From Saccostrea cucullata (taxonomy: Eukaryota), in the NCBI RefSeq assembly GCF_032062105.1, contig NW_026925998.1:806001-870000 (forward strand): a DNA stretch of 64,000 nucleotides. The letters run 5' to 3'. This document shows positions 22,785 to 60,978 of the stretch, in pieces. Each line of letters opens with the position of its first letter. Within the stretch, counting starts at the first letter, position 1. The notes beneath the pieces were generated by a model. It searched no databases and was not told where the DNA came from. It saw only the letters and a list, made by a program, of their open reading frames with translations. Position numbers and translations under genes: made by a program.

Positions 22785-24943
22785 ATGGACTCTCGGATCA
22801 TTTTCATATCGATTATTTTCCTAAGCCAGATTTTATCGTTTGCTTCAGCTGGTCACAATGAAAGAGAGACGGATAAAGGAAAATTTATTCTGCGTAAATT
22901 TATTAGGATGGATAATCAATTTTCCAACAAACTAACCATTCCAATGTCAAATGAAATACCAACGTCATCGCAAGGTACGTTGTTTGTTTGTACATGTATG
23001 TTGTTTAATGTCCCTCTCGAATTTTTTTCACTCATATGGAGACGCCACCACTTGCCGGTGGAGAGATGCAAATGTTGTCCTTTACTCGGCACTTAGGACA
23101 GGGAAGGATCTTTTTCTTGCCAGCACCTACTGCGACACGGAACCTCGTTTTATAGGGTCTCTTCTGAGGGCTCGACGTCCCACAGTGGGATTCGAACCCG
23201 CGACGTAAGGATTGACTCCTTACTTGGCGACTCTAGAGCGACGCTCTAACCACTGCGCCACGCGGGTGATTCGCAAGGTACGTAAAATAAAAGAATGAAA
23301 TAAAAAAGTAATTTGGAAAAAATCGTTCTCAGTTTAAGAAACATACATCTTTTTTACCTGTGCGTTTCTTATTTGCAATCTTGAAAGTTTAAAGAAGACT
23401 AAGGCTTATTTGATGTCATAATTTTAGTTCGAAGGATCTTATGAGTTAGATTGCGTTGATAAATATAGCTGCATATTTAGTTTCCTTTTTTCTCGAGTAT
23501 TTATTATTGCAAAAATGGCTTTTTAACACTAAATCGCGAAAACGATTGTTCCATTTTTTAAGACCATTCAGCACCATTAAATCAAAAGCGAGTACCGGTA
23601 ATTCTATTTCGCAAGTAATGCTTTTCGGAAAATTACATAACAATAAATTCCTCGCGTTTAATTAGGAATTTGCAGTATTTTGATGTTCAGACAGCCGTCC
23701 TTGAATATAAAAACTTTTTTGTTTGCTTTTCAGAACAAAACAAAGAAGATGATGAGGATTTAGGTAAGTTAGAATTTTGTTACTCAATAATTATGTATTT
23801 TTTCCCATTAATTTGAAAAAAGTTACGTTTTAGAAAATGAATAATATTTGTTGGACAAAAAACAATCTGTTACATGTTATTGTGGAACATTATTTAGTAT
23901 TCAACAAGATGTTCTTTTTCGTGAAAAATGATCTGTCTTGATTTACGTACGGCAATTTAAGTCTAAGTTGGTTGCATTAAAAACGTTATTTACAAACCTA
24001 AGACTAGTAAACCAATTTCTTTGCATCAAGATTTTGGTACGAAAAAGCATGAAATCTTTTTTTTCCACAAATAGGGTACAACTGAAGGCACAGGACCTAG
24101 AATAAATTTTTTTTATCCTTGTTTTTATTAAAGGAAGTCAAGAAAAAAAATCATCCTTATCCTTTTTTCTTATGAATTTAGCAGTAATAATTCAATCTTG
24201 AAGATATGGCTTTAAACAAATGATCTTTTATTTAATTTAATATAATGAAAACCAATATACGGGTTCTTATAATTAAATATTTTTACAGTCAAAATTAACA
24301 AACTGCTAGTTTAGGTCGGCTCAATATTTCCATGCATCAATACCTACATTGCAGTACTTTGCATGTTAGAATTTATATCTTTGCTTTAATTTAATGGAAT
24401 GACCGAACTAACATGTCATATTCAGTTTGAAGAAGAGTAATTGTAGTACGTTATATTTGGGCTTTTTAAATCGCACAGTGGTCTCGTTATTTTGGAAAAT
24501 CGTGTCACACCTGTGTGTGACATAACCGAGGTAATAACTAAGTTTGTATACATTACTGTCAAAATTCTTTACATTACAAGCCTACATGACGCAATAGTCT
24601 TATAACATGGTATCAACATCACAATACACAAAAGATCATGCTTTGTACATTGCTTAAGTATATACAGTATAATTATTTGAATAAAGTAAAAGTTAACATT
24701 TATGGGATCAGGGCCAAGGATGTAGAATTGGCCAACTATGGGGATAAAAGTATTATTCTGCAGCTTTTATAGAATTTTTAGAAAACATTTTTTGAAATAT
24801 CCTACTCAAATCTAACTGAATAATGATAGGGATATTGAAAATGGTTTCTGTCCTTTGCAGGGGATACATTTTGCTCTCTGTGCAATGCGATTGAAGATCC
24901 AAATGCTCGTAGGGATTGTATTGCCATCAACTGTGCAGAATGA
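22785..24943 (+). CDS. Secreted four-cysteine peptide gene A (100 aa); exons 22785-22974, 23734-23763, 24861-24943
   Basis: MDSRIIFISIIFLSQILSFASA (signal) GHNERETDK...PTSSQ/EQNKEDDEDL/GDTFCSLCNAIEDPNARRDCIAINCAE*. Both introns are GT-AG, phase 1, with polypyrimidine tracts; the last exon is homologous to those of genes B-E. Confidence 0.88.
22981..23270 (-). mobile_element. tRNA-derived SINE inserted at the exon 1 splice donor of gene A, 13-bp TSD
   Basis: TCGCAAGGTACGT at 22968-22980 and 23271-23283; box A/B on the minus strand (GTGGCGCAGTGGTTAGAGCG, GGGTTCGAATCCC). Confidence 0.9.
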
Positions 24944-26261
24944 CGATAATATAATGCTGAAGAATTTATAAAATTTACAAACGATTTAAATCATTAGATC
25001 CTCAGTAAACGATGAAAAAACGCTGTTTAGATGTTGATCTGTTAACTGAATTTTGAATTTATTTAGTAGATGTCTTATACAAAAACACTTTTGTTTTATT
25101 ATGTAACACTTTGAGGGATATATCCTAGATACATTTATAATGCTTTAATGTTTATACATTATTTTCATTTTGTACTCTATACTAACTATATACTGTGTAT
25201 GCCTACTTTAATAGAGCTTTCTACTTTAGATAAACATTATCTAATTGTTTATGATTCGATTGTAAATTAAATATTAAAACCTTATTGTTATGTATTTGTC
25301 TTTGAGAAGTTTTGATACAATATCAAAATACAAGTATTAATAATATTAAAATAAGAATCCGTGAAAAAAATTACAATAAACAAATTAGTTTTCTTTTCTT
25401 AATTGAGCTTATTGTTTCAAAGAGAGTGAAGTGAGTTACCGCAGTTTTCATTAATAGCAAACTTTAAGGTCTGGGAACTATTCTCAACATAACAACATTT
25501 AATGTTAATCATAATGACTTCAATTTTCTTTTTCATTGTTATACCATTTTTAATTTTCTTATCACATCATATGTAGTTCATACGCAAACGCATGCAGTTG
25601 GAACAAAAAATTTGCTAGCTAATGAAAACGAGGTTGGTAATACAAGATTGTCCCGTTAAAAGTCAATAATTAGCGAAATTTATGATGAAAACAATAAGTT
25701 TGATAACATGAAAAAGGCACGAAAAATAAGACATGTGAAAACTTCAAGTGATTTTGACAAGAATTTCATTTGAATTTTACATGAAGAGCATATCGCATAA
25801 ATATCATGCAAAGAAAACATTTTTAAACCCACATTAAGCATAGGAGCTATCATAAAATTAAAAGCATTACTTTTTTAATTTGCGGTGACTTCTATCATAA
25901 AAATGATGTAATCTTCTTTATTAATGCTTATCATTAAGAGCTAAAACTGAAAATAATTGATATAGTACAGAGTTAGGAATCAGAAAAATAATTTAATCTT
26001 TAAAGGTTTTTTTGAATCTCAGAGTTTAATTTCTTGAAATTAAAACAGTAATACGCGTATCTGCTTAATACCATTTTAATACTTTACCTGAGAACTGTCG
26101 TGAATACAAATATGTAATAAAAGGCTAAAAAATTTAGAGTTATCGTGATGACTGTCAAGGAAAAGTGAAAATCAGATAACGGACCACTTTGGTACTGTGA
26201 CTTCACATGTCTCAGTTTTCGAATACTCAGTAACCTGAAAAAAGATTATTTTATAAAATAT

Positions 26262-26690
26262 TTGGAGTGACGTACAGTATTCAAGCTCTAATCTCCATTT
26301 AATCATACAAAAATAGGAACATTGCAAGCACAGCCAACCAAAACATCAGAGGCATGAGATCAGGTGCCATAGAGGAGAGAGCATCTCTTCAGATCGGCCA
26401 CATCCGCCATGTGCTCCTTGTCATGATTGGGAAATAATGGAAAAAATCCGTCGACAAATATAATGGCCTATCAAATAGTATGAAAAACGTCGGTCAGCAT
26501 TTGACTTAATGATAAATTGTATTTGCGGACAAGGTCATCGTATCGACCACAGAGCTTACAAAATGATGATTTTAAACGAATCTGCCGATATTCTTGTTTC
26601 ATAAGCTTTTTTGTCAATAACTCGTAACTTCGATTAAAAAATTGTTCACACGTAGGGCATGATCTTGCATATCGAATCAAGTGGAACCCC
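26262..26690 (-). mobile_element. Penelope-like 3' fragment
   Basis: LIRYARSCPTCEQFFNRSYELLTKKLMKQEYRQIRLKSSFCKLCGRYDDLVRKYNLSLSQMLTDVFHTI plus the family 3' UTR. Confidence 0.82.
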
Positions 26691-26707
26691 ATTTGCAGTT
26701 GCTTTTG

Positions 26708-26709
<2 letters not shown>

Positions 26710-26753
<44 letters not shown>

Positions 26754-26948
26754 AGCACAGAGAAATTCACTTTTACAAGGATACTCACTTCCGCCCCAGC
26801 CCGGGGTTGAACTCTCGACCTACGGAATCTGTCTCCTAGCAGTGCAGGAACAGCGCGTTAGACCGCTCGGCTATCTAGGCAAGTTAAAAAACTTGCTTTC
26901 GATGCCATGGTCACAACGCTGCCCTACACTACACGGTCATTGAGAATG

Positions 26949-26983
<35 letters not shown>

Positions 26984-27085
26984 ACAACTCTTAAACTAAT
27001 ATAACTGCCCTAAGTGAAGGAATATTAATATAGAAAGCACAGAGAAATTCACTTTTACAAGGATACTCACTTCCGCCCCAGCCCG
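26710..27085 (-). repeat. (TA)n-embedded tRNA-derived repeat, tandemly repeated into an assembly gap
   Basis: Minus strand GCCTAGATAGCCGAGCGGTCTAACGCGCTG...GAGAGTTCAACCCCGG lies between two (TA)n tracts; 26749-26803 recurs identically at 27031-27085, just before the Ns. Confidence 0.7.
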
Positions 27086-27224
27086 NNNNNNNNNNNNNNN
27101 NNNNNNNNNNNNNNNNNNNNNNNNNNNNNNNNNNNNNNNNNNNNNNNNNNNNNNNNNNNNNNNNNNNNNNNNNNNNNNNNNNNNNNNNNNNNNNNNNNNN
27201 NNNNNNNNNNNNNNNNNNNNNNNN
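27086..27224. other. Assembly gap
   Basis: Run of N. Confidence 1.
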
Positions 27225-40611: not shown

Positions 40612-41719
40612 AGGGTTTTTATCACGCATAGAAATTTCTTAAAAATTAAACACTATTATATTCTTGAAACATATAATTATCGTTTAATCATAAAATAATG
40701 CTTTAAACTGTCGTATTTAAGCCATAATACGTCCGTAATGTAGGGTCTTCAGATTGAAAATCTCCACTAATTAGATAGGGGTCACGTGGTATGAAACGTC
40801 ATAGGTGTCAATGGGCAATTTTAAAGCGTATCGTAAGAAAACATCTATACCGTATAGATATTTGCCTGAAATAAAAAGAATACACCACTAGGTTGAAAGA
40901 AATTTTGATATTGACAATATTACTTTGGCTATGGATGCTCAATCTTATATGTTTTAACTTCTACAGCATAAAAATAAATAAAAAACACACCGTGAAAAGA
41001 GGAGAAGGCATTGAAGACGAAGCCGTTGACAACTCCTGTGGCTTCGACTAAATAGATCGAATTATTAACCTTTGACTTCTTAAATAATTATAAAAATGGT
41101 CATACGTTTTCTTTCTTCGTTATTTTAATAAATTATACATAAACAGATCTTGTGTACCTTCTATCTGTTCCAGCAATGAACATCATTTGATAGAAAGGAC
41201 AAAATATTACGATTTAGTCTTTGTGCATTAAATGCATATTGATTTTTTTTTTTTTTTTTGAAAAAAAATACTATTTCCATTAAATATATATTTTATATAA
41301 TACAGAAAAATTTTGATCGTACATAAACCAATGCTCTGAATATATAGACAAATCCTCGCACCGACCAAGTTTAAAAGAAACTTCCTAAAACCTTTCCTGT
41401 GCTGATTTTTCATCTAAACGCCACAAATTATTTATAAATATCTATTGATTAACCAATTATCATTTCTTAATTACTAGTAGGGTTTATAGAAAGCCATTGT
41501 AAACACAATAAGTACTTCGCTTGACCAGGACTGACACCTATGACGTCAGAGCAATGGCGCGCAACATCGGCGATCAAAATATGCATATTGAGAAATTTAA
41601 ACTTTGAATCGCTGAAACAACCAAAATATTAATTTTCTAACCAAAAAATTTTGATGGATGATTTTAATAGCATATAAACTTTGTTATATCAAAAAATCAT
41701 GATGCATGATAAAAACCCT
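40612..41719. mobile_element. Non-autonomous DNA transposon, TTAA TSD, Kolobok-like termini
   Basis: TTAA|AGGGTTTTTATCACGCAT ... ATGCATGATAAAAACCCT|TTAA. Confidence 0.8.
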
Positions 41720-42485
41720 TTAAATAATATACTCAAAACATAATTTATTCCAGGAAGACATATTTTTACAGAACTTTACTATTGTAGATATAACCCTCAA
41801 GAAAAAAATTGCACCACAGACAAAAAACATCTCTGTAGCTTTTTAGGTTTAAAGGAACCTTAATAACAAGAGGTTTAAAACTAGACATGTTTTTAACTAC
41901 TCATAAATAAAGGTGTTCATTGCATACGTATAAACTAGACAAAACAGTCGTAGGTTATTTATACAAAAAAATTGGTCACTTAGTACACACTAATTAGCAT
42001 GAGTAAATAAAAAACAAAATAAATAGGCGAAAATAATGAATAGTGATCAATCTAAAAAGAATTACGAACAATACAAATCTATGATCAGGGCATTAAAACA
42101 AGTCCCCGGAAATTTCCCAAAAATGGGATAAGAAGCCGAGGTAAAATAAGTTTCCCCTGTCGACCGGTTATATCCGCCGCGATCCCTTAATTGAAAATAA
42201 CTACCAAAATATTAAATAATATAAAATACACCAAATTTTAAAATAATTTGAGAGTGTTGTGTATGATATAAGCTTAAAACAACGATGACAGATTAAGAAA
42301 AAGATATTTGTCCGCTTTATGATCTTGTAATTGTCTGCATAGCATGTGGTGTTATTTGTTAATTTCCTCATAGTACTCCTTTTACGACATAATTGATAAA
42401 TAAGCAATTTGTCCAATCGTAATATTACACAGCACTGGTAATATTGTTGATGATTAGTACAGATCTAAACGATCCACGGGGCAAC

Positions 42486-45400
42486 ATGAAGCATTTTATC
42501 GTTTGCCTATGTATATGTGCAGTGGTAGTTCAGACAGCAAGCTATCGAACCCCAACAATTTTGGAAATGGAGAATGAAGGCGAAAATTTTGAAAAAAAAT
42601 TGCTTTTGGCGATTCTTAAGCCTTCCATCCGACATCAGTTTGAAGATTTGTGTAATGAGGATTGTAATAAAGTACCAAGCAATTTGAAGAGTAAGTATTT
42701 ATTACTTAAAAGATACTGAGTATGGTTGATTTGCAAGAGGTAATAAAGAGTATTTCAACAAACATGTCTTGAATTTTGTATGCCTGTATGTTTGCAAAAA
42801 ACAAATATTTAAAAAATAATACCTGTTTTTCAAAATACATTTCTCGGTGATGGTGATCAAAAAAATAAAACAGTTATTAAATATTTTCCAATGAAGTTTT
42901 GAATATATTTCTTAAATTTGAATGAAATTATGCAAATCTCCAAATTCATCAAAAGCAGCGCATAAATCTTTGAAATAAACCCACTCGAATGAGAACCATC
43001 TTTCTAGAAAACAGACTTTTCAAATGATGCATTTCATTTTCCCTTTCAACTTACATGACTTAGATCCAACTTTTTATTTCTGATAAATTAGATTGTCTGA
43101 TGAATTAAAAATGTATTTTAACTACATGCCGATATGCGCTTTAAAATAATCCTTGAATATTTTTGTTAGGAAAAGAAGTAGGGGATCGGAGTAAATTGCT
43201 ATTGTTACATGCCATGCCATTAATAGATAGATACAATACTTAAGATTTTTATTTGCTTAATTATAAGAGTTATCAGTAACAATTCAACTAGTGCAATGTA
43301 TATTCCAGTGGTTATATTTTTTTTTTCATTTTTTTTAAATAAGCTAAGAATAATGTTATACTGTCAATAAAGAGAGAATCTAATGAAACAGACATGTAAC
43401 AAATATTAGTTTTCTATTATACCATTTGCAGTCATAACAACTACGCGATTCGTTAATTTTTTTATCTTATTAGTAATCAAAGACAAGACGAAGTCTCCGC
43501 CAAACAAAATGTACATTCATTCATACAACATTTGTGCAAGTTTTGCTGTGATAGGATTTTACTTACATGGAAACATGGGCTTGCTCGTAATTTTCTTCTG
43601 TTCAAGCATTTGAAAAATGTATTTGAAGAATCTGTGGAAGTGTTTGGTCATTTCTTAGTCTTATCTCGAAAAAAAGCTTTTTGAGAAAGTAAACTTTATT
43701 TTTGTCATTTAAAGAAACATATACATATATGCAGATCGAATTGAGAATCTAAAAGAAGTTGGATAGCTCTTACTCCAAGATAAATCACTCATGCAAGATA
43801 TATTACCATAGACTTTTAGTTACTTGGGAATTGACTGACAAATTTTCGCATACAATGCTGCAGTTATGTGTTTGTATCTTCAAAAAATATCTATTCAATG
43901 CTTAATTATTCCCTCTAGATCTAGTTAAATAATTTTTAAAACATCTATAAAATTGAACACACATTAAAACAGAGAAAAAAAACAGTTTGCGAAGAAAGAT
44001 AGTAAAATAATTCGAATAGCTCTTGCAAATTTCTGAAATAGTAATAAATTTTAGTTAAATTTATATTTCTATATCAAAAGTAATATCGGCATGGTTTTTG
44101 TGATTTGTATAAAATACACACAGTCATAATTATGTATTGTTTTTATTGCAGTATCTATCAGAGAACCACTTTGCGATTTCTGTGAATCCATCTACAACTA
44201 CGAGGCCAGACTTCAATGTAACGCTTATTACTGTGAAATGTAGCTTAAAATCAGCGGGACACATTGTTAATAAATGTTCTCGCTGACTGACAAGTAATGA
44301 GTTAGGTGCAATATTTTTTTCAGCATACATGTTTAAGCATGTTAGTATCGATGAAATGAACCATTCCTATTTATAAATAAAGAATTTTCAGACTCATTCC
44401 TAGTTAAATTAAATTGCAAAATTTAGTTTAGCATGAAATATACTCTATGCATTCAATAATATAAGGAGATAATAAACAGTCCCCAAGCTCAAAAGTCTAT
44501 TCAAACCATAAACTTTGACCTCTTAAACATTACAGGCTTGTTCCAGTGATTTCTTGGTTGTAAATTCAGTGTTGTACTGATTATGAAAACAAGCCATTGT
44601 CAATGGAAATAACTTTTGTTATGCAAAATGAATGTCCATTTTAAGAATACAAAGTTATCGTTCTTTGCGTTCCCCTAGCTGTCAGGGTAAACCATCTCCA
44701 GACAAAATGAAACTTTTCTAGCATTGTTGTACTGTTTGTTCATAAAATGGACTAATCAATATAATCGGATACACTCAAAAGAAAAGGACACCAAGAGAAA
44801 TACCTCTGCCTATAAACTTTATTACGCTGTCTCTCCCCATCAGCCATTATGAAAAACATTGTTACTGCTCGCTGTGTGAAGAAGGGACTGAGAGGGAAAG
44901 GGTGATTGGATGGTTGAAGATGACTAAAATGTGATGATAATGATTAAGCCATTCTTCGTAGATTACATGTGCATATTAAGTTTTCCATTAAATGTATTAT
45001 GGCTTTGCATTATCTTGCGTTTAAATGCTAGTACTTAAACCGATTTTTTTCTGCGTTTATTGTGTTATATTCCTCTTTAACACCAAAAGTTTTCTAAAAC
45101 AAATTGTATCTGCTTACCTAGACGTTTGTTGTGGTTAAATGACAAATGATAGATGGTTGGGATACTTTATATATAAATATTACCTTGTTAGCGAAAACCA
45201 CCTGTCGTTTGGTCGCATTTTAAATGGCATATCTGAGATCAATTGTTAGACCTTTGTTTTTATGACAATTTAACTACGGATTATTTCTTCTAGTTTATGA
45301 AAACATTGGGCTCACTGGGCCCAAGAAAGGTTCTGTGAAAGTCTCATTAGCAGACCTATTTTTTTTATTCATATGAAGAAGAATTTGTACAAAATCTTAC

Positions 45401-48065
45401 GCGTGAAAAAGAAGAAAACACTTGCTGTGTCCTTCAACTCGGTATTTAGATATATTGACGACGTATTGTCAATTAACAATGGTAATTTCCATTCCTACGT
45501 CGATACGATATATTCTGGTGAGCTTGAGATAAAAGATGCCACAGAGTCCGACAAATCTGTTTCATTCTTGGATATTTTATTTGAAAAAGATGTTAATAGT
45601 AATCTAACAACAAAGCTATATGACAAACGTTTAACTTTTCTATCGTCAACTTTCCTTACTTATGTGTGTTCTCAAAATATATGTTATTCTTTATCTTCAA
45701 TTATATCAAACTTTCTTAAAACAGTATACATATGCAACAAACACAGGTAGATGCCATTCCAAGTTTCAAGCTAGACAACATGAAAAATTAACGTTTTAAT
45801 GATTAAGAATAATTTGAATAATAAAAACGTTATTTTTTTTCTATTCAGTAATTTACTTTGCTACGACGGCGTATTCGTGCCATTTTAACAATGTAGAAAT
45901 TTTTTATTAAATCTTTTTTAGAAAATTTTTACGATTTAATAAATCGTTTGTACATTTAGTAAATAGTACCGATTTACTAAATCGTACAAACGATTTATTA
46001 ATCGTGATTTAAAAAAATATTTCTACATTGTTTAAATGGCAGACGCCGTCGTACTTTGCCGTGTATTCTTTTTTAGAAAATTTTTAGTACATTTAGTACA
46101 AGTAGACCCTTTATATAATTGCGCAGAATTATTATTATTTCATAATTTAACATTTAATGGGGTCAAACTTTGGGTGACACTTAATAAAGCAGATTTGGGA
46201 ATCATGAACTTAACAGTTATTTTCAAGTGCGTGTTTACTCTCAGTTTAATATTATTGGCTGAATTAATCGTATACCTTGTGCAGAACAATGATAGGATTA
46301 AGCACGTTCAAAGACAATCTAAGAATCACATGTTTCAATCTGGGTTGAAAAATCAACAAGTTTTCATCAAGGACAACTTTCCGGATTTTGCAGATTTTTC
46401 AAACCACTCTGAAGGTAAATTTTAACACTGTTAACGAAATTTCCAATACAAATTACTGTATGTGTACTTAATTATAAAACGGGCTTCATATTTTAGCAGC
46501 TTTGGTGCAAACAGAGATGGACTAATTCATGAAAACCGCTAAGAAATCATTCATATATCCCTGTACAGCTGGTAAAACTTTTAAACAATTTGCAATAAAC
46601 TTAAAGATTAAAAGATGTTTTTTTTCAATGAATGCGCATAATGACGTCTTATTTAAACACTGGAATAATGCAGAAAAAATACATAACCCGCGTAACATAA
46701 CAACAAACAAAGAAAGACATTTTATTGTTTATATTTATATCTGTTTAAATTATCATTTTAAGTAGGATTAAAAATAGTAATTATTGTGTTAATGATGCGA
46801 ACGTCTTTGTAAGTTTCATTGATGGAAGCCACTGATCAAGAAGGCAGGTGATATGGTTTTACAATGGGTTTTCTTATATATTCATGGCATGGACATATCT
46901 TGCGCTAATTAATGATTACACCGACAACTCTATACCCATCGAATGCACTAAATTTTGAATACGCCAAATTATGTACATACACTTTGATGTTAAACAATAA
47001 AAGGATTATTGTTTTCGATTTATTAATATTTATGCACCAGGGTGCTGATTACAAAACTGCCAAAATATTTGATTTAAATAAAATGATATATAAGATTAAG
47101 ATGCAAGTCCAAATCAGGAATGTACAAAATAGCTCTGTCCTAAGTACCATGTTATGCTGTTGATTACGTTTTAACGAGTTCACACACAGTAAATTAACTG
47201 AAAAAGAATTGAAGAAATAAATTGCTTTAAGCAATCTGTTAATTAGAATATTATTACCTGTACATATAATATAATAATAAATTGTCCTTTTGATCAGATT
47301 ATGAAAAAACAGAACCCAAGTAGACTGACTTAGATTATGAAAAAAGCATAGGTAAGGAATTTTTATCTTATGACTCAAGTCAATGAGATATATTGAGATA
47401 AAAACAGTATTCGAGCTCAAAAGTCCATTCAAACAATACAAATCATGAGCAGAGCAAACATGGTCCTCTAAAACATCAGAGGTGGGATCAGATGCCATGG
47501 AGGAGTCATCATCCTCTGCCGACCGGTCACACCCTAAGTGTTCCTTGTCATAATCGGGAAATAACGGTAATTTCGTCGACAAGACAGTATGTAAATAAGG
47601 GACTAACTATTAGTATTAAAAACTCGAGTCACCATTTGACTTATTGATAAGTTGTATTTGCTGAGAAGGTCATTGTATCGACCATAGGTTCTGTAATGAA
47701 CATGTAAGTTTACCCACAGCTGAAAGCAAGCATTGGAAGTACTAACGTATTATTGGTAAAAGGCTTTCTATCAGTATTTGTGCAATACTTTTATTGTTCA
47801 TTTCATTTAATTACCTAAGAATAAAGATCATAACCCTGAGATCATGATAATTAATAGAGATCGATTTTAAAGCAGGTCTGTAAAGAGGACATTTAAGACG
47901 GACCCCTTGCAATTCCAGAACCAAATTTCATCGCTATTTTCTTAATTACTACACATTTTTGTTTCAGGACTTACATTATGTTTGTTGTGCCATGATATTG
48001 AAAATCACGATATTCAATGCCAATGCAAGAACCTATATTGCAGTAAAGAGAAAAGATGTCAGTGA
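42486..48065 (+). CDS. Secreted cysteine-rich peptide gene C (~106 aa); exon 1 42486-42690, last exon 47968-48065, probable micro-exon 46394-46414 (alternative or additional 43170-43190)
   Basis: MKHFIVCLCICAVVVQTAS (signal) YRTPTILEMENEGENFEKK...EDLCNEDCNKVPSNLK/NFSNHSE/GLTLCLLCHDIENHDIQCQCKNLYCSKEKRCQ*. Phase-1 donor A|GTAAGT and acceptor TTTTTGTTTCAG; same C-x2-C-x11-C-x4-C core plus two extra Cys. The middle exon is uncertain. Confidence 0.78.
45345..45665 (+). mobile_element. Penelope-like reverse transcriptase fragment
   Basis: LAVSFNSVFRYIDDVLSINNGNFHSYVDTIYSGELEIKDATESDKSVSFLDI...LTTKLYDKR: YIDD catalytic motif, FLD and LYDKR motifs of Penelope-like RTs. Confidence 0.88.
45862..46053. 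mobile_element. Small palindromic MITE with CTTTGC duplication
   Basis: TACGACGGCGT...TGCCATTTTAACAATGTAGAAAT is mirrored by ATTTCTACATTGTTTAAATGGCAGACGCCGTCGTA; CTTTGC on both flanks. Confidence 0.8.
47395..47685 (-). mobile_element. Penelope-like 3' fragment
   Basis: CATCAGAGGTGGGATCAGATGCCATGGAGGAG...GACCGGTCACACC...AAGGTCATTGTATCGACCATAG. Confidence 0.8.
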
Positions 48066-49859
48066 ATACGAATGGGAAAAGAGCGCAGCATTTGAAAGTT
48101 CTAAAACAACTTTTTATCAATGAGAACATCTTTGATTTTGAGGACATTAAAGAAGATAAACGGAGAACCTGCTGTCTCTAACAAACCAACCAGATCTCTG
48201 TGCAGGAACGTTCCTCGTTAATTTTGTGATTGGTTGATGTTGATTCTTACCCACGCAACCGACACGTTGCATTCATACACACAGAAAACTTCTGTTTTTG
48301 AATGGCAGCATCGATCGAGTTGTTTTTCTGAAATATATTTTATAAATAAAAGAATACTTTTTTCATTGTTCTGGTTTTGAGATGCAAAAATCATACAGTG
48401 ACATTGTTTTAAAAGTAAATTGACACAGAATAGCATTAATAAAATACCATACAATCTATAGTACAGAAGAATAGCAATATACAGGTATTGTGAACTATAA
48501 CTAATCATATTATAGAGTTACTAATTATTACTAATTATAGATAGGTTACTAACTTAAAGTTAATACATAATTACATTGATAGCCTATGTAACTTGACCCC
48601 TAATGTTTTTAGCTTTTAAAATTTGGTATCTCTAAAATTGCATTTAAATAATATTTAAAAACTGTGAATTCGCAAGTTAAATATCCTTTTATTATCAATT
48701 TTACAAAAAGCATATATTCAATAAAAATATAAAATACAACAAATTAGAATTTATTGTAGAAAAAAAATTTTATTTATTCAAGTAAAAAATTATTTATGTA
48801 TACATGTAGTAAAAAGAGAATAGTGAATGTTATGTATTTATTTCACAAGCTGAATATGGCTTTGTAGATTTTGTCATGAGTGTGAAGCAATTAGATCGTG
48901 GAGACATAATTTGAAATAAAATAGGCCTTAAAATGTCTCATGGAATAAACAGCCTAAATGTAAAACTACAAAGAACATGGAATATTGCGTCGCACTATAA
49001 TTACCTGGGTTTTTTTGTTTTGTTTTTTTTTTTTGTTTTTTTTTTTTTTTTTTTTTTTGGGAAGAATATGCTAAAATGAACAGATTTTCGTTTCTCCGTT
49101 GGTCACAAAAAACACGTGTTATCTTGAAGTTGTACCGCATGACCATACCACCACCAATAAAATATAAAGGACTATTCAAAAAAAAAAAATAATAAAAACG
49201 TATATTTGTTAAAAGTTTATTCTGAAAATAAAAAAAAAATGCTAACTAAATTCCTTCAGAGGTTTTAACTGAGGACGGTTTTCTACGTACTTTTAATAAA
49301 CCCCAGTTCCTGTATGTGCACATACATGTACAGTATTATGTAAATAGGACTCCAGAAATTAAAATGAAAAACAAAATACGCGCAAACATATTTATTCAGA
49401 TCCCCTTTTTAAATTGATAAATGTGTAGATATATTTAGATATAAAAATTTTTGCACATTTTTTGCGTGCTTCGTGGTCTCTTATTTTACATCTGGCTTAA
49501 TTTATCTTTCATCTCTAGGTAAAAATTTAATGTTTTGGAATATTACTCTTCAACATTTCAAGGATCTAGGAGACATCATGAACTCCAAGTCCTTTGCTTC
49601 TTCAGCACACCCTTACAAGAAAAATATTCTAAAAAGTAAATCGAAATCTGCGATAAGTAGAGCATATTTTTTTCCATATCCTTCATTTCAACACAAAAAC
49701 GTGCAGGCTGCATAAAAAATTAAAGAAAAAAAGAGACAAGAGAAAATATGCAAAAAAAGCAGTAAAAAATCAATTATTTTCAAATTGGTACAATGGAGTA
49801 GTGTCAAGTAAAGGTAACAAAAAGCACTGTGATAACTTTCGCAAGAGAGATTTGTAAGA

Positions 49860-50785
49860 TTGATTGATTGATTGTATACTGTAAACCAATTATTATACGC
49901 GTCATTTTTTATTCGCGACTGACCGCGGGAGAACTAATCTGCGACGATTTATTTCCGCGAACAAGTGGTCATATTTTTTTTATTTCCACAAGTATTTTAA
50001 AGTACTGCTTATGTATTATTTAGGACATTCTGTGGATTGTGTCTATTCAAAATCTTATATCCGCACCTAAAGTAGGTAAAATGTTACCATGAATATACTT
50101 CTTACGCATTATTCACGACGCTCGAATGAAAATCGGTAAAAAGAAAATCGAGGAAAAAAGTGTAAAAGTGCCTCGTGCTAATTGGGTAATTGAAAAAATC
50201 AATTATTATTTGGGACGGAGCAGGACTGGGCCATAATTAGTCGTAATTAACCAGGCTATCTCTAACTCGTCTGTGACAATAAATGAACAATAATAACACA
50301 AGCTGACATTTTAATCGTTTTAGCACGTTTATATATTTTTTCTGAACGTTTGTAATAAAACTTCAACTGCTTCTAGAACACTAAAATTCGTCCGTGATTA
50401 CTTATTGAATCATTGGGATTGGTACTCAAAAAAGGGCAAATAAGTCTAATAATTACATGGGAAAATGAGCCACTGGTTCGCGACGATAAATTGATTGATA
50501 TTTTGTATAATACTTGGTTTACAGTATTGTTTTACATCCCTCTCGAGAATTTTTCACTCATTTGGAGACGACACCAGTTGCCGGTGGAGAGCTGCAAATT
50601 TTGTCCTATACTCGGCACTCATGGCCATTGAGCAGGTAAGGATCTTTTTCGTGTCAGCACCTTCTGCGACATGGGACCTCGGTTTATACGGTCTCATCCA
50701 AAGGACCGGTCATCACGTCCCACATTTGGATTTGAACCCGCGACGTAAGGATAAACTCTTTCTTCGTGACTCTAGAGCAGGCGCT
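49860..50785 (-). mobile_element. SINE with 13-bp TSD, interrupted by a MITE in its tail
   Basis: GAGATTTGTAAGA at 49847-49859 and 50786-50798; removing the MITE restores GATTGTATATTGTTTTACATCCCTCTCGAG. Confidence 0.88.
49879..50524. mobile_element. MITE with TA TSD nested in a SINE
   Basis: TA|CTGTAAACCAA ... TTGGTTTACAG|TA. Confidence 0.85.
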
Positions 50786-50854
50786 GAGATTTGTAAGAAA
50801 TAAATTGAGATATCGAATAGTAATCAAGCTCAAAAGCTTAATGAATGAAAAAAT

Positions 50855-51100
50855 GGAAATAACGAGCAGTACCAAAGCTCAAAAGCTCACCAAACAATAT
50901 CAATTGGAGAAGAGCAAACACAGACCTCCAACACATCAGAGGTGGGATCAGGTGTCATGGAGGAGTGGGCATTCCTCTGCGGGCCGGTCACAAACGCCGT
51001 GTGATCCTTGTCATGATTCGGAAATTAAGAAAAATCTGTCGACAATTCAGTGTAAGGAATGGACTACAATAATTATGAAAAATGTCATTCAGTATTTGAT
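50855..51100 (-). mobile_element. Penelope-like 3' fragment
   Basis: AGAGCAAACACAGACCTCC...CATCAGAGGTGGGATCAGGTGTCATGGAGGAGTGGGCATTCCTCTG. Confidence 0.8.
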
Positions 51101-52414
51101 TCATGTTTATCATAAAGCTTTGTTCTTAGATAAACATTATCGTCTTATTAAGTAAGTTATCCGAATATAAAACAAATGTGTTGGACTCTGTGGTATCTTT
51201 TATTTCAAGCTCAACAGGATATAACGTATCGACGTAATTTAATTGACAATACATGGTCGATATATCTAAATGTCGAGTTGCAGGCCGCGACAAGTATTTT
51301 CTTTAAATATAGATTTAAATTAATATTTGACCCTATTTTTTTTAACTGTGAGCAAGAAATCTGCTATAAATCTGTAACCATAGTAACCTGTAACCTGTAA
51401 CCATAGTAAATTTACCTTTAATAGTGATGATAGTGAGATAAACGCGGCAAAGACGAATAACTCGCCATAACAATGTAATTAAATTTAACACCAACCTCAC
51501 TTATGAAAAAAATGAAATTTAGAATTTACAAAATTTGAAACCTTACTATTTTATATTGTACAATTATCGTAATTCAAATCATATTGTAAACAATCGACTG
51601 AATTTAGAGGCTGGGATATCGTTACCAGTGTAATTAAAATAAGAGATGTACTTTGAAAGGATTTTTACTTTTTCCTCTAAAATCATAAACTGTGATTGAA
51701 ATTGACAATCTCTGTAATAGATCCGCACTTCTATTATTTCACGGTTTATATTTTAGTTTCTTGGTAAAATGATGACAGATTGTACATCCACACTGTCGTC
51801 CGTCAATAATGCATGTATTCATGTATTTTAGGAATGATAATCGAATACAGAATTACTAATCGGTTAACCACAAGTCTTTCCAACCGATTAATAGGCTAAT
51901 CGTATACACACCATCTAAACATTTTTGTAATTGTTAGCTCTACCGAAAAAAAACAGACTATAAAGATTGATTATATTTGTTCAGAGCATCATAAATCATT
52001 TACTTCATCTTTATTTTGTTCATATTAAATTAAAACAAGGTTATACTTTTTTTTTAAAATGTTCATACTAAATTAAAACAAGGTTATACTTTTATTTTTT
52101 TTAAAAAATGAAAAAAGGATGCACTTTTGTTTTCATTATCTTAAATATTATTCCTCATCTTTCGTTGATAAGTTGGTCGAAAGTATGCAATATCTCATCT
52201 TTCTATACCTGAATTTTCGCAAATGACTCCAAAGCAGCACGGCGCTGATATATATATATGAACTATGCATATTGTCGTTTTGAATTTCAACACAAAGTTT
52301 CGCTTAGAATATGTTTTAAAGTACATTTGTTTACGTATTTTAATACTAAAGGTTGTAGATAATATTTTTCATAAAGTAACTGATACGATTTTTGATGAGG
52401 TCGCAGCAATGAAA

Positions 52415-52995
52415 TATATGGAAATAACGAACAGTATTCAGACTCAAATGTCCAATAGAAATACAAAATAAGAGCAGAGAAAACACAGACCTTCGAAATA
52501 TCAGAGGTCGGATCAGGTGCCATGGAGGAGACAGCATCCTTTGCCAACCGGTCACGACCGCCATGTGCTCCTAATCAAGATCGGGAAGCAACGGGACAAT
52601 CCGTCGCAAATTCAGTGTGTAAATAATTGACTAACAATTACATGTAGTATGAAAAACTTTAGTTAGCATTTGACTCAATGATAAATTGTATTATTTGACA
52701 AGGTCGTTGTATCGACCAAATAATTTACAAGATGATAACAAAAATCATGATATTCTTGTTTCATCAACTTGTTCAACAATAATTTACCTCGTTTTAGAAA
52801 TTGAACATATTGGAGCATGCTCTTGCGTATCGAATCAGCTGGGATATATAAAACCCGTAGTTAGGTGATGAAGGCATATTGCTGCATAAGGAAGGGAAGC
52901 TGACATTGAAAAGTTAATGTCATCACGTTTATCAGAGAGCTTTGTTGTTAGATTACCATTAACGTCTTTTTTAAGTAAAATATCCAAATCTGAAA
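52415..52995 (-). mobile_element. Penelope-like 3' fragment (RT C-terminus plus UTR)
   Basis: Family 3' UTR plus degenerate RT sequence (GCGTATCGAATCAGCTG; TTATCAGAGAGCTTTGTTGTTAGATT; AAAATATCCAA). Confidence 0.82.
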
Positions 52996-54101
52996 AAGAC
53001 AAGTATTTCAATCAGGACCTTTTTTTGTATAGTTTTGAACTATTTTACATTAAAACTGAATGCTACAGTTGGTATTAAATTTACATTTGATCTAATAGTA
53101 CATATTTAGTATATGTTTTGATATTGTTTGTCCATCATTGTAACGTACACACATGCATGTTATGATAATGAAAGGATTAATGAAAAAAAATACTGAGTAC
53201 TTCAGGACGATTTTTTCTAAATTCTAGCATGTCTATTATTGTAATATCCGGTATATAAAAAATCCAAAGAAACAAAATCCCTCCGAGGAAAAGAAAGTAC
53301 TAAAAGTAACCTTTAAATATCAAAATATCAAAGTCACGACTCAATTTTAAAATTTACTGTTTAAAATGTAAATTATAAAAACTGTGAATTCATTAATTTT
53401 CGTAGGGGTTTCTTTTTCGTTGTTTCCGATGTATTAAGATACCCATGAATTCATGACTACCACAAAATTTAACATTTAACTTAGAAAACTACCTAATAGT
53501 TTTCCATCCATGAAATCAATTTCCCTCGAACCAATATTTCTTTTCTCAAACCACAAAATAAATATTGTTGCTATACAAATAACATGTATATATGCATACC
53601 TCCTAACTCTTCATTGAAAACTTAAACATTGATTGCAGAAACACCTTTTACTTTCATTTTAATAAGGGGTAAAATAAACAGTTGAGTTTAAGATATTTCA
53701 TTGTATAAAAAAAGTATGCTTAACTTATCGAATCTTACAGTTTCAAGTGTTAATGAGAGTCAGCCTATCACAACAAATGTCTACCAGTTTGACAGTTTAT
53801 TATTCGTGAAATATTGGTTTCGTCCTTATATTAAGTGGTTTTACGATGTTAGAAAGAGATTTGTTTGTCCAGACAACACAGAAAAGGTTACTGGTCAGTG
53901 TGTTAAGTCACCTTACGTCCTTACAAAAACGTTATTTAATGACATTCTGCTGACCGGTGCATGTTCATATCTGTCTGACATGCAGAACAAGTCGATCCGA
54001 GGATGACAAATAAATCACGAGAATATGATTTTGGACATTATATCAACTCAAACACAGACATGTTCCATTAGTACTGACCTTACCATTCTCTGAGCACCAC
54101 G

Positions 54102-55379
54102 ATGATGAGGATAATATTCCTTTCCTTGTGTGTGGCAGCAGTACTCGTTAACTGTGATGAAAGCTACTCTGATGATAGAAACGAGGATGATTATAATGGA
54201 GCAACGTATCAACCAAATGGTAAGTTAAATGATTCTGAAGCTGTTGGGTTTAAGGCTTACAAGAGCATTAGCTTAGAATACTTAAATACTTTTTCGGATG
54301 ACAGATTATATATTTTGATGTACAATTAATTAGATTAAGTATTAAAGAAGGAATACTTACTCTCCCTTTGTACCTGATCCCATCTCTGTTTATGCCCTGT
54401 TCACTAAATTGTAAATCTTTTTTTTTGTTCGATCTCTTTTAGCTATCTTTACCTTTTTATTTTACTAGGACGTTGCTGCAATAATGTCTTGTATCAGGCA
54501 TGATAAAAATTGTAAATAAATATATTTTCGGTTATCCTTCCTTGATATAAACTATATTCCATTTTTTAGTATGAAAAAAATATGAAAGAAGTATGTTTCA
54601 GAGTAAAATAAAAATATATTGTGTGGTGGTGAAATTGTAAATGGTTATGGAATAGAAATTTTTTTTTTTATTAGTTTTCGTTACAATATTAAATATTCTT
54701 ATTTTACCATCAATTGGTATCTAAAATTAAACATGAAAATAAATATACATAGTGTTTCACAATATATGTGGCACATCTAAAGACAGATAGATAAATGACA
54801 ACTAAAGCTTATATACAAAACCACAGTAAAGTATTGCAGAGTTTGCTCTATGTATTACATTTATTCAAAAGTATTCACATATAAATATAGACATTTACTT
54901 AAAATTTTGAGATATCTTTCTTTTTTTTAATTTTTCTCTTATTGTTCTTAAATTTTGTTGCTTTTATATCTTCTGTAGCTCCAACAGATTTGCCATTTGT
55001 GAGATGTAAGTATTTATTATTTCTTTTCTTAAGTTTCTAGCATTTATAAAAATAATATATATAAATTTATTTGTGAACGTTTTACACAATCAAGATTGGA
55101 TCTTAGAGACAAAAATGGTATTTTAATTAAGAGTTTATCTTAATACTTTGGCCAAATCACCATCTTACATTTTAGTTACTCATTAAAAGGGTAACCTTTA
55201 AACAATTTATCATATCTAGTTACTGGTAACTCTTTTAACCTATGTTTTAAAAATAATTTTATTTTTCTTCTCTTTTTCTCGTAACAGTTGACTTCAACGA
55301 CTCACTCTGTGCTTTCTGTGATTACATTTACGACTTCGTAGCTCGGAGGCGGTGTAGAATACAATATTGCGCATTCTAG
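54102..55379 (+). CDS. Secreted four-cysteine peptide gene D (78 aa); exons 54102-54219, 54979-55005, 55288-55379
   Basis: MMRIIFLSLCVAAVLVNC (signal) DESYSDDRNEDDYNGATYQPN/APTDLPFVR/FDFNDSLCAFCDYIYDFVARRRCRIQYCAF*. Both donors are GTAAGT, acceptors are strong, both introns phase 1; AATAAA at ~55705. Confidence 0.9.
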
Positions 55380-57339
55380 TAGTCATCCCAAAAGCACATC
55401 TTCATCAGCTTTGATTTTTTCTGTCTCAAATTAAAATGTAGTATTTTGATTCAAAACCTAGGGAAAATATATTAGAATATCACGAATAACAAAAAGGTAG
55501 TAGTTGGCTGTATATTTTTGTACACATTGATGCTGATGTAGTAAAGAAATTGAGATCCTTGATTTTGACTTCTTTTTTTTTTTTTTTAAATGTCCAAATT
55601 AAAGCTAAGAACATCATTCTTGTTACACAGATATCATGTTTACATAAATATTTCTATGTCTTTTTTTAATTTATGCAAATTTCTATTGGTTTTTTTCTAC
55701 TTCCAATAAATATATATCTTACGAAGTATTTACTTTTTTAAACTCTCATTTGATATGAGTCTGTACCAATTGCTGTTTGCTAAGAAAAAATCCAAAGAGT
55801 TTTATCAATATTGGACTTTTACAATTAAGGAGCGCTAACATTTACAGTTGACGGCTTACTTTCACACTAGAATTATTTATGGACGATATTAATTTTGCGA
55901 TGTAAATATTTAGGACAAAATAAACTTCAACGAGTAAAACATTAAATATCAAAGAACACACATGTATAAGTTGTCCTTGAAGAAAAGGACACCATCTAAC
56001 CCTCAACTCCCGGCCTTCACATGTAAGTGCCCATAACACTATACCTATGACCTTTAGAAAGGTTTTCTTATGTATTGGCATTTCTGTTCCACCGTGCATG
56101 ATACTATTGTAAATGTACAAGTAAACCATCAACTGTTAAAGTCAGTGTTCCTCGCAAAAGCCCATTTGGGCAGTCTCTGTATAGTATATATAGATAGTAT
56201 ATATAGATAGTAAGACATCAAAATTTATGATGTATTTTTCCCCGTTTTTTTTTAAACAAGCATAAAAGGCTGTAGAAATATATAGGTGGGATGCATGTAT
56301 AACGGTTGTCCTCTATGTCATTTTAGTTTAAGAGCAGTCATTTTTATCCACTACTCCTCCTGTTTCACAAAATGATTTTTAGGAATGTCAGCTAATTTTA
56401 GGTACATTGCGTATATTTCCTATTTGGGATTTGGGTTGATTCAAAAGTGGAGTTTCACACAACATAACATGAAATTTTATTTTTTATGATAATATTGGCG
56501 GTATCCATATTTAATGTATTATCCTCTTCTTTCGATGAATAAAAGTTAATTATACTCTCATAGAATGCATGGTATCATTGTTATACTTATAAATAAAAAA
56601 AAACTGTAAAACATTGTAACCTGGTCGAGCACTTTCTGAGTGCAATTGATATACAGTATTCCTAAATAAAGGTGTGTATACTAGTATTTTCTTGAAGGAA
56701 ATAATAAGTAAGATTCCCCCTCTTTTATACATCTGATCTAAAACCCTGATCTTTTCATAGGTCCACGTTGGCCTTGATCAAAATATGTATTTGTTTATTA
56801 GACTTTTAATATTGTTACAGGTGGTTTTTGTTCATTATCTTTGCAAATCATCTCGTTACGATGATGAGTAAGAAATTACTCCTACCATACTTTTAAAACG
56901 TGTATTCCCGATTAATCCTGTTCCTATTTCCTGTTATGTACATGTACATGAATTAATTCTGAAAACAGGATATCTATTTGTATTCTTAATTATATTCTCA
57001 GCTACTTGTACATCTTTTGTTTTAATTACATTTATCAAGAACTAACTCATGTTTTTTTCTAAATGCTAATGGAGTTAATGAGGGGAAAGCAACATAAAAA
57101 TTAAATGCAGAATTTTAAAATTGTTTTATCAGTAACTGCCCGTACCTTATTCTGTGAAACCTAACAATTAGTTTGAAGATCGTTAAAAAAAAAAAAGATT
57201 TCCTCTTCATCATCAAATTATTTTCAAAAGATTCAAGATCAACACATTTTTTTTTATCTAAAAACATTTATTATCTCAAGCTGTAAAGGTTTCTACCGAT
57301 GAAATACACAGAGATAATACCAGCATACAGTATACAGTA

Positions 57340-57545
57340 TACAACAGTATTCAAGATCAAAAGACGATACCTAATCGGAGCAGAGCAAAAACGTACCTCC
57401 AAAATCTCAGAGGTGGGATCAGGTGCTATGAAGGAGTGAGCATCCCCTGTCAACCGGTCACTTCCACCGTGTACTGCTTGTCATTATCGGGGAATTACGA
57501 CAAAATTCGATGTCAATTCAGTGTGTGAATAATGAACTAACAATA
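57340..57545 (-). mobile_element. Penelope-like 3' fragment
   Basis: TCAGAGGTGGGATCAGGTGCTATGAAGGAGTGAGCATCCCCTGTCAACCGGTCAC. Confidence 0.8.
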
Positions 57546-58098
57546 AATTTAATTAATTAAATTTATTTAATTTTAATTAGATAGAACTCATGTTAGCCCG
57601 ATTTTAAAAGTAACATGTTTTATCAGGACGGAGAACGCTTTACAACGTTGCAACGTCAAAAACATCATTAAGAACTTTTCTCAATATCACTCTTAATCAT
57701 TAAATGGTCCAGTGCTGTATTCTCCAATATTTCAAGTTTAAGACTACACCATGTATTTCCTTCAAATGTACATCGCATATTGCTACAAAACCTCAAATTA
57801 TAAGAAAGCTTTAAAAAGCCTAGATATCGAATATCTGAATCAAAGTCCATTTTTCGTTTGTTTGAACATAAAACAAAATAGCAATCAAATAAGGATTTTA
57901 ATACTCAGTATTAGAATTGTAAGATTTGATGTCTCTTACTTAACGTGGTCGCACTGGATTTCCATGTTCATATTTGTGTAAAATCCTGTTGACGTCCTGT
58001 CTGAAATGACTAATTATATATTTTAATTGCTAATTAAACTTAAGCTTTTTATCACAGATAAATATATATAATCTTCACGTTAGTCTTAAACTTCAAAC

Positions 58099-60978
58099 AT
58101 GAAGTTAGGTTCCATTTCTTTGCTTGCGATAATTATTTTTCTATTAGTGGTAGAAACCTTTTGCGTGCAGAGAAGACAACGAAACCGTGTCAAGCATCAT
58201 GGTGCTCGAGGACTAAAAAGCAAGCAAAAAACTCGTAACAGAGGTAAGCCAACTTTAAGGTTACGCTCTTATGATAAGTAAAATACCGTGGAAATAGGCC
58301 CAGGGCCATAAAACTTACAGGAGATCAACTTCGATCTCCGCCTCACTTTTAACAATATATTTCTTTTGTGAAATGAAATATAGGGAAATAACAAACAGTA
58401 TTCAAGCTCAAAAGTCCATCTATTACAAAATAGGAAGGGACCAAACACAGACTTCCAGAACATCAGAGGTGTGATCAGAAGCAATTGAGGAGTGAGCATC
58501 TCCTGCCGACTGTTCACACCCGCTGTGTGTTCCTTGTCATGATCAGAAAATAACGGCAAAATTCATGGACAACTCAGTTTTTAAATAATGGCCTATAAAT
58601 TTGTATGAAAAAACGTCAGTAAGCATCTGGCTAAATGATAAATTGTATTTACTGACAATGACATTGTATAGACAATAGATCTTACGAAATCTTAAACGAG
58701 ACTGCTGATATTCTAGTTTCATCATTTTGTTTGTCAATAATTTACTTCGCATTAGTAATTGTACATCAGTTGAGCATGTATTTACGTATAGAATCAGCTG
58801 AGAGTTATTAACCCCGTATGCTGGTGAGAAGGTGATGAAGGTATACTGCTACATAAGTAAGGGATTTTGACGATTGAAAACTTAAAGTCATTGCATTTAT
58901 CATAATGTTTGATTGTTAGATTACTATTAACATTTTTTCAGTAAAAAATGGAAATATGAAACAGATGTGTCAGACTCTTTGGCTTTGGTGTCTATTTATC
59001 TCAAGCTCATAAGATTTGAAACAACCACTGTTAATTGAGAATATGATATCGTCGATATGAAAGTTGGACTTAAAGTTGGATTTAATTTTTGTAAAACATT
59101 TAATTGTTGGCATTGTATGACTTCGGAGATAATTTTAATTTCAATTTTTTTCAATGTTAAATAGAAATATAATGTGAGCTTACAAAGAAAACGCGTTACC
59201 CAACGTATTCATTTTGCGCTATCAAAACGGACTTGATAACAATTACGAAACAGGTTTTATCGTTAACTCTTCAGAAAAAAGATTACCACTTGAGGGAAAA
59301 ATTGTAGCTTTATTTTATATGAATCATTTTATGTATTCTATTGCTTATAGGCAAGCTCACCGCAGCTTGTTTTTGCTAATTTTGTGCAAGTCAAATAAAA
59401 CACTTTCATAAAGATGAATTATGTCATTTATTAAAATGACGGTATAAATGTGAACAATTTATCAAACAAGAAGGGGATCAGACTTACAAGCTTTGATTAT
59501 CAGTTACGTAAGATATGATAATGTCTTATCCCTCAAAATGACTAGGAAAAAGTATCTGTAAAACAAGACAATCAAAACATCATACGAAAAAGTTAGCAAA
59601 AAAATGGCACACCAAAACAAAATAGGCCACAAGATATGACATGTAAGTCATATCTATGTGATATGTGATATGCAGATCACATCCATGCCATCCAAGGTGA
59701 GCTTGCACACAAAATGAATTCTATATGGAAGCAGTTAATCACTGGCCTATCCATACATTGCATCTCAAAGGAATAAAATAGAAATCTACCTATTATTATT
59801 CCATAATCAAAGTTTACACGAAAATGTAGTTATATGTAATACAACATGAAGGAAGTACATATATCTAACGGAAAGATTTTAAACTTTATTATTTCAGGTC
59901 TTGGAGTTAAACCGAGATTTAGACTTACTTGTAAGTATAGATGAAATGTCAGATGATATTCTTTCATGCAGGTAATAAAGCACATACATGTGTACCCATC
60001 CTTAAAGTTTAAAGAGTGGTCAATTACTTTGATTGCTACCAATGAAAGATTTACTATCGGAAGAAGCTCTAAATTCATTTAATTTGATTTGATTTAGTAT
60101 TTACACATGAAACACATTATACTTTTTTGGAGCTAAGAAGCCGAAAAGCACAAGTACGATGATTTACGGGCCAACTCACTTGGCAGTGACTTTGGGGCGT
60201 TGAGGCCATGTCCTTGTATCCTTCGAACAAGACCGTATAAACTGCATCGCAGTAGATACTGGCACGAAAAAAATCCCTCAGTGCATGCTCAGTCAATAGC
60301 CTTAAGTGCAAATTACAGGTCAAATTTTTACATCCCTCCACTGGCAAGTGGTGGAGTCTTCATATCGGTAAAAATGAGAAATCTATTTGAACATCTACCT
60401 ATGAGCTAGGGCAAAAATTAAATCAACTTCGAAGAGTCTTGTTGATTTGTCTACTTCTTAGCACTCTGTCATTAATTTACATATACGTTTTGGTTTGTTA
60501 AAAACACTGGACACTCTGTAAAGTTTTAATAGTGTCATTTTTTATAGTTTCCTTTTCATTAACAGGACATAAGTGTGCTTTTATGTCACATAAAAATTAA
60601 CTTTCGTAAATTTCGATTATTAGATTTTCGGTGGGTTATGACTCTTTCCAAAGGGTGTGAAAGAGAAGAAAGACTTAGAGGGGCACATTTCTCTTAGAAT
60701 CAATAAAGAAGCTTAGTCATAAAATGATATGTGATAAATTTTAAGTAAAATGTTGTTATTCTGAGCAATTACACCCAATCAAATATACAGCAAAAAGTAA
60801 TTATTCTGAAAACTCAAATTATATTTCATATGCACATTGTAAAGTTGTTTTAGAAAGTTTTGTTCAAGTATTTTGAATAAAAAAATTGTTTTTCTGCATT
60901 TCAGCTACTGCACAGATTGGTGATATGTTCTGTGGCTATTGTCGTACCAAAACGTGCATACGAAAGTTTTGTGGATGA
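58099..60978 (+). CDS. Secreted, strongly cationic four-cysteine peptide gene E (83 aa); exons 58099-58243, 59898-59930, 60905-60978
   Basis: MKLGSISLLAIIIFLLVVETFC (signal) VQRRQRNRVKHHGARGLKSKQKTRNR/GLGVKPRFRLT/STAQIGDMFCGYCRTKTCIRKFCG*. GT-AG phase-1 introns; GDxFCxxC start and C-I-x3-C end as in genes A and B. Confidence 0.87.
58375..59060 (-). mobile_element. Penelope-like 3' fragment in intron 1 of gene E
   Basis: KLLTNKMMKLEYQQSRL...NVIVSKYNLSFSQMLTDVF plus the 3' UTR and degenerate RT upstream. Confidence 0.82.
60185..60385 (+). mobile_element. Degenerate SINE copy in intron 2 of gene E
   Basis: GACCGTATAAAC...CTGGCACGAAAAAAATCCCTCA...GGTCAAATTTTTACATCCCTCCACTGGCAAGTGGTGGAGTCTTCATAT. 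Confidence 0.65.

Follow-up and report, generated by a model that had tools for sequence, protein, structure and literature searches.

Genes and extent of the array

The window, a 64-kb stretch of Saccostrea DNA, contains six complete genes (A, B, F, C, D and E, in order of position) which lie on the plus strand and each encode a putative secreted peptide with a C-terminal four-cysteine module, and a seventh gene (G) begins at its very end (Table 1). The first-pass annotation of this sequence had described five co-oriented genes. Their orientation was confirmed in every case but the count was low, as it had missed gene F (42486-44243) and the start of gene G. The genes share a layout in which an ATG exon with a hydrophobic N-terminus ends in a phase-1 GT donor, and all introns are in phase 1. 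The last exon begins at a phase-1 AG acceptor located 2-9 codons upstream of the first cysteine and reaches a stop codon shortly after the fourth, and the joined exon sets form stop-terminated open frames of 78-129 aa. In all six genes the signal-like N-termini were called with a hydropathy rule and not by SignalP, and by this rule the signal peptides proposed earlier hold for each gene. Micro-exons, which had been attributed to all five of the original genes, were found for A, B, D and E, but no convincing one was identified for C, nor for F.

Table 1. Coordinates of the features in the window
Feature	Position	Strand	Remark
Gene A exon 1, signal-like peptide and spacer	22785..22974	+	identical to XP_062608521.1 (LOC134270317) aa 1-63
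Gene A micro-exon, 30 nt, acidic	23734..23763	+	
Gene A last exon, C-x2-C-x11-C-x4-C module	24861..24943	+	10/22 residues identical to AP7 C-domain
Assembly gap	27086-27224		intergenic, between A and B; unfilled
Gene B exon 1, signal-like peptide, basic stretch, 13-Ser run with four S-x-E motifs	33753..34023	+	
Gene B micro-exon, 39 nt	34770..34808	+	counterpart exon in S. echinata model
Gene B last exon, 4-Cys module	35967..36046	+	dN/dS 0.22 vs S. echinata
Gene F exon 1	42486..42690	+	ATG at 42486
Gene F last exon, 4-Cys module	44152..44243	+	
Gene C exon 1	46204..46414	+	
Gene C last exon, 4-Cys module and two additional Cys	47968..48065	+	
Gene D exon 1, acidic spacer	54102..54219	+	
Gene D micro-exon, 27 nt	54979..55005	+	predicted only
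Gene D last exon, 4-Cys module	55288..55379	+	
Gene E exon 1, Arg/Lys-rich spacer	58099..58243	+	
Gene E micro-exon, 33 nt	59898..59930	+	predicted only
Gene E last exon, shortened C-x2-C-x4-C-x4-C, Gly-stop end	60905..60978	+	
Gene G exon 1 start	63953..64000	+	

A six-frame scan placed the C-x2-C-x11-C-x4-C motif on the plus strand at 24872, 35978, 44172, 47979 and 55308, and the shortened form belonging to gene E at 60931. The positions and sequences of the five last exons reported before were recovered unchanged; the spacing that had been assigned to all five applies to A, B, C and D, but not to E. Across the array as a whole the spacing is exact in A, B, C, D, F, G and H2, whereas the loop length deviates in E, H1, I, J and K and ranges from 4 to 12 residues over the bivalve members. 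The module itself measures 21 residues and is present in one or two copies per gene of the array. The spacers that precede it are acidic or Ser-rich in A, B and D and Arg-rich in E, I and J, the net charge is acidic for A, B, D and F and reaches +17 for E, and the modules of I, J, K and of Mytilus are rich in Arg and Lys. Several members are strongly cationic, a property which was counted against the matrix role considered below.

Past the window end the contig carries G, H1, H2, I, J and K, six additional genes in the same orientation, with the module exon of G located 1.5 kb beyond the boundary, and the tandem array therefore extends over contig positions 828,785-928,176, approximately 100 kb, and comprises at least 12 genes. 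An exon-profile search of the genome gave an extra match 13.5 kb downstream. No more members were seen over the 130 kb that follow the array, nor on its other side in the initial 22 kb of the window and the 20 kb ahead of the window. Contig C706 is a copy (90-94%) of the H2 region; contigs C3800, C12144, C7970 and C22597 probably represent alternative haplotypes, and the profile matches on contigs C22398, C4849 and C9559 are weaker. The assembly gap lies 2.1 kb past the stop codon of A and 6.5 kb ahead of the ATG of B and breaks no gene model, and a dispersed inverted repeat is the only sequence shared by its flanks. The distance from A to B is the only result that depends on it. A minus-strand motif at 21157-21095, which has no suitable acceptor, a cysteine pattern at contig position 893520, which two stop codons precede, and the long Cys-rich matches P0008 and P0017 were set aside as due to chance, and an exon at contig position 898243, considered as a separate gene, is an internal module of gene I.

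The mutual similarity of the last exons, as claimed originally, stands out clearly from a shuffled background: their non-cysteine columns score 141, compared with a mean of -196 (SD 33) and a maximum of -22 in 20,000 shuffles. In 150 simulated windows the motif occurred 0.03 times per 64 kb, and never together with an acceptor and a stop codon. Gene A is identical to RefSeq XP_062608521.1 of Saccostrea cuccullata, with three exons that match those derived here, and H2 to XP_062608523.1, which has two modules. Gene B, the orthologue of S. echinata LOC133174204, has two counterparts in that species which share its exon layout, and the dN/dS values of gene B against S. echinata, 0.13-0.22, are indicative of purifying selection. 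The modules of orthologues are conserved, and recent duplicates have dN/dS values near 1 that are based on few changes. The reading frame of a C. gigas member is unbroken in ten Logan contigs (0.9-2.2 kb where a length is given), as would be expected of spliced transcripts. The best explanation of the array is that its genes are functional.

Bivalve relatives and predicted fold

A profile search of 1.84 billion representatives yielded 16 matches, which take in Saccostrea, C. gigas, C. virginica, Mytilus edulis, M. coruscus, M. galloprovincialis and M. trossulus together with an unplaced animal protein and two matches due to chance, while word-based homologue searches recovered close relatives only. 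The oyster and mussel relatives are all annotated as 'uncharacterized'. C. gigas LOC105331338, C. virginica LOC111126843 and LOC111126627, and Mytilus LOC134723266 with its relatives share the module with the array, together with the succession of signal exon, small exon and module exon in phase 1. Unlike the genes of the window, the Mytilus proteins carry 2-4 modules, which follow a signal exon and a micro-exon, the introns being again in phase 1. In C. virginica, genes like H2 and like I/J/K lie in tandem with their order kept, and distinct old paralogues preserve their order between Saccostrea and Crassostrea. The idea of an old family of secreted peptides is supported. The relatives in Crassostrea and Mytilus speak against a family that is lineage-restricted in the narrow sense. 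Neither the exons nor the full-length database proteins had a Pfam match at cut-off, so that the family is without a Pfam model, and the ESM Atlas gave no feature match and structure matches to generic hairpins only. The literature search, which covered openly accessible papers, found no paper that names the oyster genes or describes the family.

AlphaFold2 models a single module as a helix-loop-helix (pLDDT 81), which agrees with the fold first suggested and predicts that the module is a helical hairpin. Two Mytilus modules with their linker are modelled as a five-helix unit (pTM 0.69), and two modules and a linker helix are accordingly predicted to pack into a compact bundle. As the four cysteines are invariant and the hairpin is secreted, they would be expected to form two nested disulfides. 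Fold searches with the module and with the two-module mussel unit returned no significant match (best Z 3.6 and 6.8, respectively), the nearest folds of the module being nigellin-1.1, BWI-2c and Tk-hefu (E above 5, Z 3.6). These plant alpha-hairpinins are four-Cys helix-loop-helix peptides like the predicted module but differ from it in their spacing (C-x3-C...C-x3-C versus C-x2-C...C-x4-C), in the lack of any sequence match and in their plant lineage. Framework XIV conopeptides are also short, secreted, helical peptides with four isolated cysteines, and molluscan ones, but their spacing is unlike that of the module; no conotoxin was matched in Pfam or PDB, and oysters are not known to have a venom system. 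Of the resemblance to both groups that had been pointed out at first, only the analogy of fold remains. Bivalve defensins, big defensins, mytilins, myticins and macins have 6-8 cysteines and a fold that contains beta-sheet, whereas the module has four conserved cysteines, an all-helical model and no Pfam match, and the initial distinction from these peptides is therefore upheld.

Probable relationship to abalone AP7

AP7 is among the best-studied nacre proteins in vitro. Its C-terminal domain (AP7C, PDB 2JYP) is the best PDB match of every profile, in an ungapped alignment of 21-22 residues with E-values of 2.6e-4 for the six exons of the window, 4.9e-4 for ten oyster modules, 3.1e-4 for a mussel-only profile, 2.9e-4 for a joint profile and 0.013 for gene A alone. 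The module is thus not unrecognised, as had been supposed, since it matches a characterised domain. Like the bivalve proteins, AP7 consists of a signal peptide, a variable N-terminal part and a C-x2-C-x11-C-x4-C module, and hydrophobic, Asp-Pro and Arg positions are conserved in both. In contrast to AP7, the bivalve proteins are encoded in a multigene array (12 genes or more), and their spacers vary between acidic and strongly basic. The bivalve match stops short of residues 1-11 of 2JYP, a structure which does not include the N-terminal 30-aa calcium-binding domain of AP7, and the spacers of A, B and D (acidic) and E (basic) are compared by composition only.

AP7C scores approximately 24 bits, whereas random peptides with planted cysteines have a median of about 0 and a 99th percentile of 12-14 bits, with no more than a fraction of 1.5e-4 attaining 24 bits, under a null that ignores the constraints of a helical hairpin. 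The designed helical peptide 5KWZ, in which Asp-Pro caps a helix, reaches 19-22 bits with the mussel and joint profiles, which implies that the AP7C match is in part due to a generic helix-capping Asp-Pro motif. At E 0.001, the profile search among the 1.84 billion representatives returned no abalone protein.

The AP7-like protein Tri_24151 of Haliotis laevigata, described as AP7 plus a 58-aa insertion, makes up as much as 4% of the identified nacre protein and was detected in nacre by mass spectrometry with its spacer intact (PMC6003135). In the published sequence a signal peptide is accompanied by two modules of identical spacing, and the second module, aligned by eye, shares 9/21 residues with gene A and 9/21 with a Mytilus module, which suggests that the '58-aa insertion' contains a second copy of the module. 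Two modules per protein are also present in oyster H2 and I and in the Mytilus proteins.

It is proposed that the bivalve module is homologous to the C-terminal domain of AP7, a relationship which the sequences make likely. That the two instead converged on a small helical hairpin with two disulfides, the family being a separate invention of pteriomorph bivalves, is rather unlikely. The alignment covers just 22 residues, 5KWZ comes near to AP7C on the mussel profile, and 2JYP is absent from both module fold searches, which are weak for 33 residues. Convergence would nevertheless have to account for the exact spacing, for a score far above the Cys-planted null, for the agreement of two independent profiles, and for a precursor layout and an internal duplication that are common to both, in molluscs on either side. 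The bivalve family also bears on the abalone protein itself, as it suggests for AP7C a possible helical hairpin with disulfide bonds in place of a RING-like metal site.

Possible role and significance

Judged by its sequence, the module of the array is probably the AP7C domain, and localisation to the shell is a candidate property of the array members. The leading, if tentative, reading is that the members are secreted by the mantle and serve in assembly of the shell matrix or in modulation of crystals, a reading kept at slightly below an even chance because its basis is a single characterised relative together with composition. The gene product would consist of a signal peptide and a fast-changing, low-complexity spacer followed by one or two hairpin modules, whose cysteines would close into the nested disulfides upon secretion. 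The stable hairpin could then act as a unit of self-association or partner binding, as is reported for AP7C, which in vitro is involved in nucleation, in self-assembly and in interactions between proteins (reviewed in PMC6003135). The charged spacer would touch mineral ions or the matrix, and a self-associating module joined to such a spacer is what would give rise to a role in matrix assembly or crystal modulation. The poly-Ser/S-x-E tract of gene B is of the kind that is phosphorylated in mineral-binding proteins. It speaks against the matrix role that the shell of adult oysters consists largely of calcite and is not known to contain nacre. The members of the array may differ in role, and the literature search found nothing that places bivalve members in tissue or shell proteomes.

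The same genes could be precursors of defence peptides of mucosal surfaces or haemolymph, which would act like plant alpha-hairpinins as antimicrobial or protease-inhibiting hairpins. The tandem expansion, the high positive charge and Gly-stop end of gene E, the basic modules of I, J, K and Mytilus, the alpha-hairpinins among the nearest folds and the dN/dS near 1 of recent duplicates, few as the changes are, would all be in keeping with such a function. It is nonetheless an unlikely one, as the fold matches are not significant, A, B, D and F carry a net acidic charge, purifying selection acts on the orthologues, neither Pfam nor PDB relates the module to any defence-peptide family, and the sole characterised relative is a shell protein. 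Signalling or reproductive peptides (hormone- or pheromone-like, or of the gamete surface), in which a pro-region releases a receptor-binding module, are more improbable still: the layout resembles a prepropeptide, spacers contain dibasic sites and distinct old paralogues persist in a preserved order, but A, C, D and F have no common cleavage site directly upstream of the module, the Mytilus repeats are without clear dibasic separators, and the spacer of the abalone relative is intact in nacre by mass spectrometry (PMC6003135).

With its four-Cys module shared by oysters, mussels and AP7, a shell protein that was described only from abalone seems to be part of a wider, unannotated family of molluscs. 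AP7 was not detected among ESTs of shell-forming tissue in pearl oysters (PMC3120837), in keeping with the notion of different nacre gene sets in gastropods and bivalves, and outside subscription journals no report of bivalve AP7-like proteins was found. It is possible, if somewhat doubtful, that the C-terminal module of AP7 is an ancient secreted domain of molluscs which gastropods and bivalves both inherited, which was expanded in oysters to a multigene array and in mussels to proteins of several modules, and which is used in the shell matrices of both. A bivalve family with the AP7 module would mean either that the module was part of the toolkit of the gastropod-bivalve ancestor or that it had an older task and was later co-opted into abalone nacre. 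If the inherited domain is indeed used in both shell matrices, a textbook example of a lineage-specific nacre protein would become one member of a shared and overlooked biomineralisation family.

Second cysteine module in an abalone nacre protein

The 58-aa insertion that distinguishes Tri_24151, the AP7-like nacre protein of Haliotis laevigata, contains a second C-x2-C-x11-C-x4-C module (published sequence, PMC6003135 supplement 28). This second module is preceded by Ala-Asn-Pro-x-Cys, as is that of oyster gene G of the tandem array (L017:1467-1574).

Repeats and neighbouring genes

Within the array, the poly-Ser/S-x-E tract in the spacer of gene B is made of a 6-bp repeat, and the counterparts of the gene in S. 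echinata carry two or three SSSEE-type units. The tandem satellite at window 28588-29586 has a unit length known from oysters. The transposon-like ORFs located between the exons of array gene I resemble DIRS/tyrosine-recombinase elements; those downstream of the array appear LINE-like and Harbinger-like. In the multi-exon gene upstream, the 909-aa ORF is low-complexity and charged.

Features in and around the array
Feature	Position	Strand	Basis
Kelch-repeat gene exon	window 2621-2884	-	Pfam Kelch_1, E 0.002
Multi-exon gene, upstream of array	window 6052-14385	+	909-aa ORF, 215-aa ORF, Death-domain exon
Death-domain exon of this gene	window 14038-14382	+	Pfam PF00531, E 3e-7
Tandem satellite	window 28588-29586		166-bp unit, about six copies
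Gene B spacer tract	window 33930-34000		
Transposon-like ORFs	S. cucullata contig C8135, 901,272-905,453 and 968,713-976,432	-	ORF text alone

Module-like sequences outside the array

P0012, which is probably an animal protein, is encoded on a 1.16 Mb contig (ENA ERZ25074796, L042:5001-5492) and carries three short C-x2-C-x7-C-x4-C modules; it is Arg/Trp-rich and reminiscent of oyster gene E with its shortened module. Weaker matches on S. cucullata contigs C22398, C4849, C9559, C8955 and C2921 (E 1e-4 to 0.1) may represent a second locus of the module family.
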